Source of the DNA: Blepharisma stoltei ATCC 30299
Lineage: Eukaryota > Protista > Ciliophora
Length of the DNA: 64,000 nt
Direction: 5' to 3'
NCBI GenBank assembly: GCA_965603825.1
Contig: CBFDEM010000044.1
Location: forward strand, 620,001-684,000
Shown here: piece after piece, positions 14,135 through 39,660 of the stretch
Layout: each line of letters opens with the position of its first letter
How positions within the stretch are numbered: the first letter of the stretch is position 1
Position numbers and translations under genes: made by a program
Notes under the pieces: model-generated
Told to the model about the DNA's origin: nothing
Database searches by the model: none
Seen by the model: only the letters and a program-made list of their open reading frames with translations

Positions 14135-15773
14135 TTAATTTTTATATGATGAAATTTTTGTAACAGATAAATGGACTATTAAATTTGTAACCTACATGAT
14201 AAGATTACAAAATAAATGAGCTTTTGAGGTTGAGATATATAGAAACATTAGTTATTTATTGAAGAAAAATATTATTTAGACCGATTGAAATTCACATATA
14301 AGCCTTCAAAACGAGTATTTATATACTTAGATCAAAAATATTTAATAAGAGTTGATTTTCTAACATTTAGAGGAATAATTAAAATAGTCTATCATAATAT
14401 AACTCAGCTAGAATCAATGTCATTATTTCTTGTCTCTATTTTTGATAGTAACACATCATCTTAAAATTAAATAGTCATATAGAGTAAATTTATTAACAAT
14501 ATAAAAATTCTTCATAAAGTTATTTTTTCACAGAAATTTATTAAGATAAGAGCTTATCTTTAAGCAAAATCAGTTTATTTGAGTAGATTCTTCAAGTAGT
14601 TTGCATTTGGAACTAAATTAATAGAAAAATTCAGATTCATGAATGATAACTATTTGATTATTTTATTGCTAATAGTCTAGCATAATAAATATTTAAAATA
14701 ATTTAATTTATCTTTCATAATTGATTAGAAAAGCAGTATTCTTCAAAATACAACTGAAATTATAAAAACAAAATTTGACTGATTAAATTTGAAACCGACA
14801 TTTTGAAGAATTTTAAAATTCAAAATGATAAAAATATCAAGTTTTCTTGGACCAAAAGCTTATTTAAAGCATTTATAAACGCTAGAGTAGTTGTTGATAA
14901 CACATTTTCCAAATTAAGCCTATAGAATTTGAATTGACCTTTATGAGATTTTTCGGGATAATTATATAATAAAACTAAAATAAATTCAAATTAAATTTAA
15001 TTAAAACTTAATTTGTATTTATTTTCAATTTTAATTATTTGCTAAAATAAATTTTTTCTAAAGCACATTAGCACATTTGATGATGAGGCATGGAAATACA
15101 TTAAAGTCGGATATCTTTTAGCAGAAATTGCAGAAATCGATGACTTAACTATATGTGAAACCAGTTTAAACAAAGAATAGAATTAGAGATGACCTACTAA
15201 ATAATTTAAATAAAATTGAAAATTTAGGTTTAAATAGGGATGCTTAGTTATGACACTAAGATAAATTTATAGATTCAAGAAAATGGTTTTATTACAAAAA
15301 TTAAAATTTTATCTTTCTATAATTCACGTTTGGAATTACATTAATTGCGGTGCGAGCATAGTTTGCATATTTATAATTGCCGCTGGTTTTTCTCTTTGTC
15401 TGTACTTTTAGGAGTTTTTGATTGTGAAATTGGATATATTCAAAACTAAATAATATGCGTGCTTATAAATGAAAATACCAAAGCGATCTCTGAATGAATT
15501 TTAGTAACGATTTATATAATGAGCCACTATTTTTTGCCTTTTTACAAAGAATTTTTGCTAATTTTAACATTGAATTCTGGAAAATAAAACGAAAATAAAA
15601 AATCACTCGAGGATATTGAGCTAGCTGATTTTGATCCTTAAATAATAATTATAGATTTCAATTTTAATATTTTTTATTACTAAATTCTTTATATTTCTTA
15701 TTATTCCTTTTCAGGAATGAAATTACTTTATCAATTATTCCATTTTCTTGAACCTTTGATAATTATAATTATC

Positions 15774-18809: not shown

Positions 18810-20252
18810 ATGAGAATCTCATTTTATTTAGAAGAAAGTCAATGCCAAAGAAACTGTAGCTGCTGTCCAAAGACTATAGAAAAAGGAGACTTAACAGTAA
18901 GAACTTGATATTATTTAAGATTTTATTTTTTTCACCTGAGCTGTTATACCCCAGGGCTCAAGCAGCCCATCTATAAAAAAGACTTACAAATTTGACTAGC
19001 AAACCCAGAAAAAGAAAAAATTTTCAATTTATGGCTTGAGAAATGAAATAAAAACTTTGCTCCAATAAATGAACTCGAAATTGATCTCCCAATGGCTTCT
19101 AAATTCACTTACTCGAAGCCTTCTACTTATAGAAGAGCATGATTAGAAACCTTTAAATTTCTAAACGCAAAAGAAATTGCTTTATCAATTTCTCACGTAA
19201 ATAAAGATTTTTACCTCATTTCATGTGACGAAGAATTATGATATTTTAATTCTATAAGAGATTATGGCAAAATAGAGCCTGATATAAGAAATTATAGAGA
19301 GCAATATATTTTATTTACTTTGAGAAACTGTGTGTATTGCCACAAAAATGCTGACGAGGATAATATTGTAGGAAATCTTTATAATAAGTCGATTTGTAAA
19401 GCTTGCAAAGGATTGAGACGGTTTGATAAAATGACTGTAAAGCAAATAGAAAATCGATATGAGGTTGATCCAAACCTTTTGGGTTTGAAATTTGATATGA
19501 GTGTAGAAGGCTGAAAAAGGACTTATAGATTTATGGCGATAGAAGCAATAAAGAAAAATAACGCAAGCTTTATAAAAGTCAATCCAACTGGGATCAATGT
19601 AGGTGAAGAAAATAATTTGGACTTGGTACTTCCAAAAACGCCTTTGAATAAAAGAATTATAAAAATAATCATAGTTGGTGACTCAACTGTCGGCAAAACT
19701 TCTCTCATGAATCAATATGTCATCAAAAGGTTTTCTGAGGTATACAGAGTTACTATTGGTGCTGACTACATGGCGAAAAATATCAATATAGATGGCAAAC
19801 TAATGACTCTTCAAATCTGAGATAAAGCAGGCTGAGAGTGCTATTTCAGCGAAGAAGCTGCGTTTTACAGTGAAGCTGACTGCTGTATATTGGTCTATGA
19901 CATAACATCATGTAAAAGCTTCGAGAATCTTAAATCATTAAAAGAAAAAATTTTGTCGCTCAGGAACGATAAAACTGATGTAAATTTTCCATTTATTGTA
20001 GTGGGAAATAAAGTTGACAGAGAAGATGAAAGAAAAATCTCAAGTGAAATTGCGAGGCAATGGTGCAGAGAAAACGGAAATATTCCGTTTTACGAGACCT
20101 CAGCTAAGGAGTATATCAATATTGATAACGCTTTTATGATGATTGCAAGAAATGTACTGATGCATGCTGAAATAAACACATCTGAGTGTGATTTTCCAAA
20201 TCCAGATGCTGAGAAAACCATAAAAAGGAGTCCATCATGCGTTGTTATCTAA
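18810..20252 (+). CDS. 480-aa fusion: PARP-type Zn finger + F-box + XPA-like Zn/helical domain + Rab7-like GTPase with CAAX
   Basis: Single frame from ATG 18810 to TAA 20252 with only TGA inside. CSCCPKTIEKGDL...FHLSC; WLETFKFLNAKEIALSISHVNKDFYLISCDEELW; CVYC-x18-CKAC...KMTVKQIENRY...LKF; GDSTVGKTSLMNQYV, TIGAD, QIWDKAGWE, ADCCILVYD, FPFIVVGNKVD, ETSAK; ends CVVI. Confidence 0.85.
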
Positions 20253-20941: not shown

Positions 20942-22636
20942 ATGGAATGCTGAATGCAAGGGTGTCGAAAAAAAGTTAAAGTTTTCTGCCAATGTGCGAA
21001 TCCTGTAGCCTACTCTTGCGCCGCTCATATATATGAGCATCTTCAAATTGCTTCGTTTTTAAAGCATGATCCTCAAACCTTAAAAATAAAAATAAATCCA
21101 AAAAACAAGGAAGATTTAATTGAAGAACTACAAAAGCTATCAGAAGAATTGCTTGATATAAAAGAAAACTTAATAAAAGAAACATATAAGAAAATACAAG
21201 AGTTAGAATTATCACTTATTGAGGCGCTAAAACGTATTAACAAGATAAGACTAAATCAAGGTGAATTAATTAGAAATATTGAGATGGTAAAAAAATTACC
21301 AAAAATAAATCAAAATCCGCTTGAAAATCTTTTAAGCTTAGATTCAGATAGTGCCCGAAAAAAGTTGAACGAGTTTGGATGCAGTTTTAATCGTTCAGAT
21401 TTTGAATTGAACAAAAAAGATAGAACCGATATTGTTGAAGACAATGAAATTGTGTATTTTAGGGCTAAATCAAAAAACTCAGTTAGAGCAATAATAAATA
21501 ATGCATCCCAGCCTCAAAAAGCTAATGAGACTCAGGGAAATATGCTAAGCCTAGATTCAATTGCAGCTGATCAATCTCACTGTTCTTTAACCATAGCCGA
21601 CCTCATAAAGCTTCAAAGTGTGCTTCGAGGATACTTTGATCGAAAAAAGACAAAAGAAGCTTGCACAAGTCTAAAAGCTGATCAAGTCGAAATAGAGCTA
21701 GGAAACCAAAAGGCAGCTTCCGAATCCCAACCTCCCTTCTTCAGAGGCTACATGCAAAATGATATGCAAGACATCCCTATAACAGGCACCGAAATCATCC
21801 TGATTCCTGATGGAAATGTCCCAGATTATTCCAATAATGAAACAAGAGCTGCCCAATCCAAGCTTGGGAACTTCAGCCCTCCTCCCCCTCCTAACGATCA
21901 GACTGTCAAAACAAAGCATGGGCCTGCTCAGATTGAAAATGGAGCAATTTATACAGGGGAATGGAATAATGATAAACAGAGACATGGCTATGGAGTCCAA
22001 GTGTGGCCTGACGGCTCGAAATATGAAGGGTACTGGATGTTTGACAAAGCAAATGGAAAAGGAAGACTCATACATGGAGATGGAGAAGTCTATGAAGGAG
22101 ACTGAAAAGATGACAAAGCCCATGGCTATGGAGTTTATATGCACACTGAAGGAGCTAAGTATCAAGGTAATTGACAAGATGATAAACAGCATGGAAAAGG
22201 AATAGAAACTTTTCCTGATGGAACTAGATATGAAGGAGATTATATCAATAGCAAAAAAGAGGGCCGAGGCATTTTCATTTCGGCCGATGGGAACACTTAT
22301 GATGGGGAGTTTCAAGATGATAAACCCCATGGAATCGGAAAATATACATGGAGCGACGGCAGAATCTATATAGGAGAGTGAAAGAACAACAAAATGGATG
22401 GCAAAGGGCTATTTAAATGGCCTGATGGGAGAAGCTACGAAGGTGAGTATGTTGAAGATAAGAAGCAAGGATATGGCACTTTTACTTGGCCAGACGGAAG
22501 GAAATACCAAGGATTTTGGTTTAATGGAAATCAGCATGGGAAAGGTGTTTTTTTCTTTGCACAAGGGAATAAAAGAGAAGGAGAGTGGAAAAATGGGATA
22601 AGAGTCAATTGGATTTTAGATGAAAATAATAATTAG
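20942..22636 (+). CDS. 564-aa chimera: family-1 Zn module + coiled coil fused to IQ motif + MORN repeats (copy B)
   Basis: Uninterrupted frame with TGA=Trp at MORN YxGxW positions (e.g. 22103). Family-1 sequence runs to 21488, then [16 protein letters not shown] (IQ) and about ten YEGxWxxxKxHGxG repeats; TAG stop. Confidence 0.87.
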
Positions 22637-28131: not shown

Positions 28132-29557
28132 ATGATAAAATCTTTATTTTACATAGAAGCCAACCAGAGCACGGGAGTTTGCAAGGAATGCTCAGGAGTA
28201 ATATTAGAAGATGCATTGATGATTAGAACTAGGAAATACAATAAATTTTATTATTTTCATTTGAACTGTTATACTCTTAAAGTCAAAAAATACATTAGTA
28301 AAGATGAAATAGAGATTTGGAATTTAGACTCAGAAAATGAAAGGATTCTCGATCTATGACTAGAGAAGTGAAATAAAGATTGAACTCCTGCAGACAGAAC
28401 TGATCATATAATTCATGAAAATAAGACTCATGACAATACAGCTCCTAATAATAGCACTCCAAAAGTCTACTCAGAGCTCCCTAAAAATAGAAGGGTATGA
28501 TTAGAAGTCTTAAAATTTCTATCTCCTGAAGAAATGATTAGATCCATTTCTCAAGTCAATAATTACTTTTATCTAATCTCAAACAATGAAGAGTTATGAA
28601 AATTTTATTATTTAAAAGATTTTGGGAATATAAATTCTAATGAAACCCATTATAAGAACCAATATATTGCTCTTGCTGCAAAATGCTGTTTTTGGCTCCA
28701 TAAAATCGCAGATGAAAATAATCATCTTCTATCAATTTGCCCAAGATGCGGAATTTCTGAAATTAATCCTCAAGCTTTGAAATTGAAATTTAATATTTGG
28801 GATCGTCTCTCAAAAAAGAAATATCAAAATAAGTTAAACCCGGCAATTGAAAAATTTAATATGAAGAAGAGAAATTTAATAAGAATGATTCAAAAAAAGT
28901 TTAAGGATTATAGTCTAGCTAATTTTGCTGGAAAAGGGAAGTGTGAAGAATTTATTGATCTAGATTCTGTATATTCTTTACTAGAAATCGAATCATCATT
29001 TAGTTTCAGAGAAATAGAAATAAGAATACTTATTATTGGAGACACTGGGCTGGAGATAATTCTATTTCAGTCAATATTCTGGTAAAACTTTTACTTCTAC
29101 TTCAGGATATAACTTGAATAGTTGAAAAAGGAAAGTTAAAATGGAAAATAAAGAGATAATTATTCGATTTATAGCAGTTGGGATCCGAAGCTTCATATGC
29201 ATGCCACCTTATTTCTTTCACAGCTCTGACTGTTATATACTAGTCTTTGACATAGCATCAAGAGAAAGCTTTGATCATCTTGAGGAAATAAAAAAAAGAC
29301 TTTTAGCTTACTTGAATATAGAGCCAAATGAAGATTTCCCATTTGTGGTAATAGGGAATAAGACTAATATGGTAAGAGAAGTGCCATATGAGATGGCAAA
29401 AGAATGATGCAGAAAAAGTGGAAATATTTCAGTATTTGAGAGTTCAGCAAATGATTATATCAATATTGCTACAGCATTTGAGATGGCAGCAAAGAAAGGA
29501 GAAGAATGGCACATAAAAAAGTGATTTGAGAATTGCATCAAAAAATCCAAAAATTAA
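28132..29557 (+). pseudogene. Second PARP-ZnF/F-box/Rab fusion paralog; frameshift at the P-loop, degenerate GTPase
   Basis: CKECSGVILEDAL...FHLNC; RRVWLEVLKFLSPEEMIRSISQVNNYFYLISNNEELW; ILIIGDTG, then a frame change at ~29050-29066; SDCYILVFD, FPFVVIGNK, ESSA; stop TAA 29555-29557; no CAAX. Confidence 0.78.
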
Positions 29558-38816: not shown

Positions 38817-39660
38817 GATTAAGATAAATTTATAGATTCATAAAAATGATTAATAAAAGACATTGTATTCTTAATCATTTGAATATAATTTACCTAAAAG
38901 AAAATTAAAAATCTATAAAACATGAAAGATTTATTAAAATTGTCTATTTAAGCATCAAAAGTAGTTCAATAATTCCACTAGATAAAAAGTAAGCCAAAGT
39001 CGTCTAACTCATGATACCGATTATTGTGCTGTATATTGATAATAATTATTCATTAGCTTTCAAGCCAAAATTTAACAATAAAATATATTTCAACATTAAA
39101 TTTATTTAATAGAGATTTCTTCAATTATTCATCATAATAATTATAAAATGGGAGGAATTATATAGAAAATTGGTAAATACTCGAGTAAATGCAAAAAATG
39201 AATATCATCAGGAGATTTAATCATTAAACTTTCTTGAAGTAATTTGATTTGAAGCTTCATTTGATGTGCTATACTTCTGAACTAAAGCAACATATTTATA
39301 ATTGTCGCTGGCTTTTCACTTTGTCTTATTTTTAGGAATTTTTGTAATTATTTTAATTGCCAAGTAAAATTGGCGTATTCAAAATTAACTAATGTGCTAT
39401 AAATGAAAATGCCAAAGCGAATTTTAGTGACAATTTCTATAACGCGGCCACTAATTTTTGCTGATTTTAACTGTAGTTCTGGAAAATAAAAAGAAAAAGG
39501 AAAAATCAAGTGAGGATTTGAGCTAGCTGTTTTTGATGTTTAAATAATAATTATCGATTTTCAATTTTTATTTCTTCTTTTATATTCATTTTGTCCCTTT
39601 TAAGGAATGAAATGACCTTATCAATTATTCCATTTTCTTGATTCTATAATAATAATGATC

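Follow-up and report, generated by a model that had tools for sequence, protein, structure and literature searches.

How a Rab7-like GTPase came to stand behind a PARP-type zinc finger, an F-box, and an XPA-like zinc domain in a single protein, and what such a protein might do, is the question raised by one gene of the ciliate Blepharisma stoltei ATCC 30299. The gene lies in a 64,000-nucleotide stretch of contig CBFDEM010000044.1 (assembly GCA_965603825.1), referred to here as the window, and window coordinates are used unless another contig is named. The genome analysed comprises 41.46 Mb in 64 contigs (G000 in the locus designations below). The MAC genome of B. stoltei has been described as 64 contigs obtained with HiFi reads from a nearly homozygous strain, with UGA translated as tryptophan and introns of 15–16 nt (PMC9942806).

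One Reading Frame with Four Modules

When TGA is read as tryptophan, nucleotides 18810–20252 of the forward strand form a single open frame of 480 codons that runs to a TAA, with a further in-frame TAA nine codons 5′ of the ATG (Table 1). At the local base composition, a frame of this length is expected by chance with p ~1e-14. Eight TGA codons lie within the frame, at residues 33, 62, 79, 111, 144, 235, 337, and 342, and in alignments those at 79, 111, 144, and 337 stand opposite conserved tryptophans of paralogs or of Rab7. Three GT–AG 15/16-mers occur inside the gene, none of which is needed for the open frame. For the B. stoltei MAC+IES assembly, GCA_914767885.1, NCBI predicts an identical 480-residue product, a gene prediction rather than transcript evidence, with Pfam matches to the GTPase (Ras superfamily) only. 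The open frame, the tryptophan-aligned TGA codons, and the matching prediction bear out the initial annotation, which had read the locus as one intact gene.

From the N to the C terminus, the protein presents the motif C16–C19–H42–C45, an F-box-like motif at residues ~104–150, the site C174–C177-x18-C196–C199 followed by KMTVKQ..Y..LKF, a Rab7 G domain from residue 282, and a terminal CVVI. All eight zinc ligands and the G1, G4, and G5 motifs are kept.

Table 1. Positions of the fusion gene, its modules, and its sister copy in the window
Feature	Position	Strand	Basis or remark
Fusion gene, 480 aa, UGA=Trp, intron not required	18810..20252	+	open frame; NCBI annotation, MAC+IES assembly
PARP-type zinc finger fold, aa ~2–82, ligands C16, C19, H42, C45	18813..19055	+	family profile, paralog model
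F-box-like motif, aa ~104–150	19119..19259	+	family Pfam matches, Z 8.3 to FBXO31, own segment score
XPA/Rad14-like domain, C4 zinc site C174, C177, C196, C199 and helical subdomain, aa ~172–250	19323..19559	+	paralog model
Linker and fusion junction, aa 251–281; C-terminal helical tail of the family missing onward	19560..19652	+	alignment; family match ends at aa ~250–255
TA left by excised 438-bp germline-limited IES, codon 273/274	19627..19628	.	comparison with MAC+IES assembly
Rab7-derived G domain, aa 282 to ~455	19653..20174	+	Pfam Ras 51 + 87 bits; Rab7 top PDB match
Empty intron site in P-loop codon	19687..19688	+	15–16-nt intron there in 6/6 canonical Rab7 genes
CaaX motif CVVI; parent Rab7 ends CC	20238..20249	+	sequence, alignment
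Sister fusion copy	28132..29557	+	P-loop frameshift, zinc Cys lost, XPA-like part partly deleted, no CaaX

Two units might instead share the frame by chance, an upstream F-box gene and a Rab7-like GTPase started internally at Met242. An in-frame ATG 40 codons before the G domain and the IES that separates the two halves in the germline are in keeping with such an arrangement, but no stop closes the upstream part, the linker resembles coding sequence in composition (34% GC versus 21–26% in the flanks), Met242 lies inside a conserved helix of the family to which the N-terminal half belongs, and a sister copy of the gene has the same join without any IES. Two separate units are thus a most improbable reading.

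An Older Family Supplies the N-Terminal Modules

Residues 1–250 of the fusion protein are those of a member of a larger protein family, the profile of which gives 24 matches at ~21 loci in the B. stoltei genome. Most of these members are 320–350 residues long and end in a helical tail. A search with the family profile among 1.84 billion representative sequences returned 253 proteins at E ≤ 0.001; the relatives fetched come mostly from environmental contigs, many of them ciliate-like, and one relative reads through TAA/TAG, which extends the family to ciliates that use a different code. The N-terminal trio of modules is an older, widespread family, and the Rab domain alone is new. A literature search found no paper describing a family of PARP-finger/F-box/XPA-like proteins.

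Support for the individual N-terminal domains comes mostly from the family and from the AlphaFold model of the closest paralog, which is 43% identical over the region (pLDDT 95) and was used for the fold search; the fusion protein itself entered these searches as TGA-bounded pieces. Its N-terminal pieces gave no Pfam match, and the locus is absent from the genome-wide scan listings for zf-PARP, F-box-like, and XPA_C. In a 103-row alignment of the family, Pfam matches were obtained for F-box-like in 96 rows, zf-PARP in 41, and XPA_C in 2. Compared with solved structures, the family profile matches PARP1 fingers at E 6e-12 and F-boxes at E 5e-7.

The zinc finger, named from its CxxC..HxxC ligands in the initial annotation, is backed by the fold as well: residues 2–80 of the paralog model match PARP1 fingers at Z 9.0, the corresponding segment of the fusion protein scores 62.6 bits on the family zinc-finger profile, and a paralog lies above the zf-PARP Pfam cutoff. 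In the family profile alignment, the six residues of PARP1 segment 40–45 are missing from the whole family, and the equivalent of PARP1 Arg34 is missing in both fusion copies, with a Thr in the fusion protein. In PARP1, segment 40–45 (the base-stacking loop) and Arg34 are DNA-contact elements.

For the F-box, residues 103–175 of the paralog model match FBXO31 at Z 8.3, several paralogs exceed the F-box-like Pfam cutoff, and the segment in the fusion protein belongs to the family, with 65.9 bits on its profile. The motif is weaker in the fusion protein than in the paralogs; it is cut into pieces by TGA codons in the Pfam scan of pieces, and the locus is unlisted at E ≤ 1 in a read-through scan of the genome. 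In 88 of the 103 family members an Arg occupies the position at which canonical F-boxes carry a Glu, and the conserved Pro is absent; KDM2A, a Skp1 binder, likewise has no Pro there in the aligned chain. This Pro and Glu of F-box helix 1 presumably form the Cul1 contact. Assembly of a full SCF complex is uncertain because of these two differences, and the Arg may signify Skp1 binding without Cul1.

The XPA-like module is the weakest of the domain calls. Residues 174–252 of the paralog model match XPA and Rad14 at Z 6.4 and 6.3 (rmsd 3.1 and 2.4 over ~75 residues), values below 8 being modest, and the truncated piece of the fusion protein itself has XPA as its top structural match, but weakly, at Z 3.8. 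A sequence profile search against the PDB gave no match to XPA, and Pfam XPA_C was matched neither by the fusion piece nor, with the two exceptions above, by the family. A sequence link to XPA is provided by a gene on another contig (L052/L090, G000:C6:195890-196735, minus strand), the sole XPA_C match over the cutoff in the genome. There, XPA_C is preceded by an F-box-like motif and a C4 zinc site, and this F-box protein is matched by the family profile at E 2e-7. Judged by its sequence, it may be B. stoltei's nearest thing to XPA. The XPA-like hairpin of the fusion protein is shorter than that of the C6 protein. With the family profile, the paralog model, the protein's own pieces, and the C6 gene considered together, the earlier domain calls hold, and each of the four modules has profile or fold support.

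The PARP1 and DNA ligase III fingers and the XPA/Rad14 domain thus share folds and zinc ligand patterns with the modules of the fusion protein, whereas sequence identity is 12–26%, the PARP1 DNA-contact segment is missing, and regions for catalysis or for contact with NER partners are absent.

A tandem cluster at G000:C46:659600-665700 (L029–L031, L035, L039) holds five or more PARP-finger/F-box/XPA-like genes that are not fused, one of them split by a frameshift, and several genes of this cluster contain IESs in the germline assembly. Further family fragments near 39190–39300 of the window reach E 0.1 only and were not confirmed. A distant family member from a Logan contig, P0143, continues for ~800 further residues, repeat-like by eye, which suggests that the family module also joins other C-terminal partners. 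The broader lead offered by the locus is this unfused parent family, in which an F-box is joined to two DNA-damage-sensor folds in ~21 copies in the present genome.

The Rab7-Derived Domain and C Terminus

The G domain is 61–62% identical to the two closest B. stoltei Rab7 proteins. In agreement with the Rab7 type assigned earlier, it nests with the Rab7 genes L054 and L055 (support 95/96) and has Rab7 as its top match in the PDB. The nucleotide-binding motifs G1 (GDSTVGKTS), G2 (TIGAD), G4 (NKVD), and G5 (ETSAK) are intact. In G3, WDTAGQE is changed to WDKAGWE, such that the catalytic switch-II Gln is replaced by Trp and the Thr by Lys. Switch II is heavily changed as a whole, and the RFQSLG and YRG stretches of the parent (RabF4/F5) are replaced. 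Compared with Rab7/Ypt7, which is a small single-domain protein, the fusion protein has 480 residues with a 281-residue N-terminal extension, the Q-to-W and T-to-K changes in G3, rewired RabF4/F5, a CaaX motif in place of CC, and no P-loop intron in its gene.

A CaaX motif with Ile as X predicts geranylgeranylation, and Rabs of the CC type depend on REP (PMC9141697). The loss of the RabF residues would be in keeping with a move away from REP dependence and towards prenylation of a CaaX motif. The initial annotation had placed the GTPase on late endosomes. Because the switch-II Gln and RabF4/F5 are lost and constraint on the domain is relaxed (see below), late-endosomal targeting is not to be assumed.

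The canonical B. stoltei Rab7 proteins (L054–L059) read GDSAVGKT, in which Ala takes the place of the Gly of human Rab7, and their genes have one common P-loop intron.

Origin of the Fusion

A Rab domain follows the family module at just 2 of the ~21 loci, the fusion gene and the copy at 28132–29557. No Rab fusion was found among the 156 relatives fetched (best 150 matches), in a database whose gene calls follow the standard code and cut other Blepharisma genes at TGA. The fusion was found at two loci, both in the same genome and one of them no longer intact; the N-terminal trio is widespread.

The donor lineage can be read from the Rab part. Compared with L055 (G000:C5), the fused Rab has dS 0.67, and compared with other Rab7 genes, at least 1.3; a codon model favours its pairing with L055 by 7 log units, and in the DNA tree a placement just outside L054 + L055 is still allowed (AU p 0.16). 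A clade of intron-bearing Rab7 genes that leaves the fused Rab out is rejected (AU p 0.02), with p 0.055 when the long sister copy is included. At the intron, the alignment of the fused Rab with L055 has a gap of exactly 15 nt. Because the intron is lost exactly and the domain nests among intron-bearing genes, retroposition is the simplest reading, and the fused Rab7 would most likely be derived from mRNA.

Duplication of a Rab7 gene at the DNA level, followed by intron loss, is a possible alternative: a single intron was available to score, other Rab7-like genes of B. stoltei also have no P-loop intron, and homology of the flanks to the donor is not significant. An apparent match by eye to donor UTRs around the fused Rab was no better than shuffles, the sequences being too diverged. 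Neither a poly(A) remnant nor a target-site duplication was identified at the fused Rab. Non-LTR retrotransposons are present in the B. stoltei genome (PMC9942806, PMC9942856).

The two fusion copies are sisters both in the N-terminal tree (98/94) and in the Rab trees (80/81, 81/90), and one fusion followed by duplication therefore explains them. In its Rab P-loop (~29050–29070), the sister copy is missing a net 2 nt, and the Cys that it has lost is one of the second zinc site. The same frameshift is present in a second assembly, in which the annotation is split. A hidden intron that would mend the frame was rejected: the sole frame-restoring 16-nt candidate starts with GA, and RNA-guided annotation keeps the gene split.

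With retroposition as the preferred reading, a processed copy of a Rab7 gene of the L055 lineage would have joined the 3′ part of a family member in frame, replacing its helical tail in a single event, and a local duplication would then have yielded the sister copy, which is now decaying. We consider this origin highly probable. As an example of how a new gene arises in a ciliate, the locus is well resolved, in that the donor, the lost intron, the one fusion event, the duplication, and the unequal fates of the copies are readable from the genome. Chimeric retrogenes of the jingwei type consist of an intronless copy fused behind part of another gene and evolve fast thereafter. The present fusion is like them in these respects, whereas it occurs in a ciliate with 15-nt introns, has an IES at its junction, and owes the evidence for its RNA origin to one intron.

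Both fusion genes lie inside an array, at 15366–63016 of the window, of ~418-residue genes starting with MECW and many partial copies at 72–86% DNA identity. By eye, the array genes encode a Cys/His N terminus, a coiled coil, and a kelch-like C terminus. Directly 3′ of the fusion gene, at 20942–22636, an array member has its C-terminal part replaced by MORN repeats, which adds another domain swap to the locus.

An IES at the Junction

The germline form of the linker is interrupted ~25 nt before the Rab domain by a TA-bounded 438-bp IES (Table 1), and the fusion frame therefore exists only after somatic excision; were the IES retained, the protein would end before the Rab. Because the sister copy has none at the same join, the IES is unlikely to have caused the fusion. 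IESs occur locally at a density of one per 1.2 kb, which gives an ~8% chance of an insertion in the linker, and ~70% of B. stoltei IESs are intragenic (PMC9942856). The 438-bp IES shares 125 nt at 75% identity with another IES and has no homology to the family or to Rab7 flanks. Its derivation from the lost gene tail or from a Rab7 promoter was rejected, since every frame contains stops, nothing in it matches the family, and it resembles another IES. The IES entered the linker of the window copy probably after the fusion; we regard it as a later, ordinary insertion, the position of which is suggestive at most.

Selection and Possible Function

The N-terminal part is under purifying selection, with omega 0.21 on its terminal branch (below 1 at p 0.006), and the Rab part is relaxed. 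On the fused Rab branch, omega is 0.52 (p 0.07 versus 1) or 0.40 (p 0.19), values for which neutrality of the Rab alone is not rejected, compared with 0.02 for the ordinary Rab7 background. Neutral drift over dS 0.25–0.48 is expected to leave 13–19 stops in 480 codons, and none of 300 simulations stayed open; the frame has therefore been kept open, although its Rab part is far less constrained than the parent. The fusion is probably a functional chimera maintained by selection.

A different reading of the same values is that constraint on the chimeric gene is weak and fading, the F-box part being selected and the Rab a tolerated passenger that drifts like the sister copy. The Rab omega of 0.4–0.5, which is not distinguishable from 1, is in line with this, as are the erosion of family motifs (SWDEELW at its W, and the CPL motif), the broken sister copy, and the location within a gene array that evolves by birth and death and is crowded with partial copies. 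A passenger, however, should have accumulated 5–8 stops in the Rab part under neutrality (P(none) ≤ 0.02), whereas that part has also kept G1, G2, G4, and G5 intact despite the heavy change in switch II and has kept a prenylation motif in a new form. Fading constraint is accordingly rather unlikely.

If expressed as predicted, the selected chimera would be an F-box protein that binds Skp1 and keeps both zinc modules as folded domains. A single geranylgeranylation at CVVI would anchor it to endomembranes, and the Rab7-derived domain would bind guanine nucleotide, hydrolyse GTP poorly, and present a new switch II, serving targeting or partner binding rather than acting as a cycling Rab. The protein may in this way couple a ubiquitin-ligase adaptor to membrane traffic, as do RhoBTB, Rab40, the ARF–F-box fusions, and yeast Rcy1. 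A prenylated F-box adaptor with a GTP-binding, poorly hydrolysing Rab module is a tentative functional proposal, drawn by analogy; to the explanation as a whole, origin and function together, we incline with some reserve.

A different role had been suggested in the initial annotation, that of an SCF adaptor that senses nucleic acids at phagosomes, lysosomes, or degrading nuclei, with zinc modules that bind damaged or structured DNA and a Rab7 part that places them on the membrane. Ciliates break down nuclei through routes akin to autophagy and also digest the DNA of their prey, both zinc modules have DNA-damage-sensor folds with intact ligands, and the GTPase part is of Rab7 ancestry. Residue-level support is lacking, however, as neither PARP1 segment 40–45, absent family-wide, nor an equivalent of Arg34, here a Thr, is present; in addition, the XPA-like hairpin is short relative to that of the C6 protein, a prenylated protein would face the cytosol and not a DNA-holding lumen, and switch II is no longer Rab7-like. 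DNA sensing appears doubtful from these residues, the weakest step of the earlier proposal, and we consider such a role improbable.

In a wider and decidedly improbable form of this idea, PARP-finger/F-box/XPA-like proteins would be undescribed DNA-structure-sensing ubiquitin-ligase adaptors of ciliates, acting perhaps at genome-editing breaks, one member of which was retargeted to membranes through a GTP-locked Rab7, with IES excision as a possible developmental switch. If true, the capture of Rab7 could serve to tag nuclei or prey DNA that are to be degraded, and excision at the junction could switch between soluble and membrane-bound forms during development.

Comparison with Other GTPase–Adaptor Proteins

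RhoBTB and Rab40 combine an atypical small GTPase, with altered G3 or switch residues, with a cullin adaptor (BTB and SOCS box, respectively). Similar to these proteins, the fusion joins an atypical small GTPase with altered G3 and switch residues to such an adaptor; the adaptor and the cullin differ, and RhoBTB and Rab40 are conserved families, whereas the fusion is a two-copy novelty of one genome. Lineage-specific, recurrent fusions of F-box or BTB motifs with ARF-family GTPases have been reported (Vargova et al., 10.1101/2020.10.31.363457). They too are lineage-specific and couple a small GTPase to an adaptor motif of ubiquitin ligases, while the GTPase of the fusion protein is Rab7-derived and its F-box is flanked by PARP1- and XPA-fold zinc modules. 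The initial annotation had called the architecture undescribed. A literature search found no paper describing the four-module fusion; F-box/small-GTPase fusions as such have been described, for the ARF family.

An F-box together with a C-terminal CaaX motif, as in the fusion protein, is found in yeast Rcy1, a Skp1-binding protein and effector of the Ypt31/32 Rabs (PMC2241642), and in human FBXL2, which ends in CVIL and is geranylgeranylated (PMC9141697). Unlike the fusion protein, in which a Rab is built in, both are without a GTPase domain. The fusion is a lineage-limited variant of F-box/small-GTPase coupling and adds a Rab case to the recurrent association of small GTPases with ubiquitin-ligase adaptors, its importance being limited by its narrow distribution and relaxed Rab.

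A frame of at least 620 residues elsewhere in the genome (L060, G000:C57, ~669700–670030, minus strand) runs in frame into an intronless Rab7-like domain. Its N-terminal part resembles, by eye, a multi-pass acyltransferase-like membrane protein, and the Rab7-like part is without a prenylation motif. From its sequence, L060 appears to be a second, independent Rab7-like fusion.
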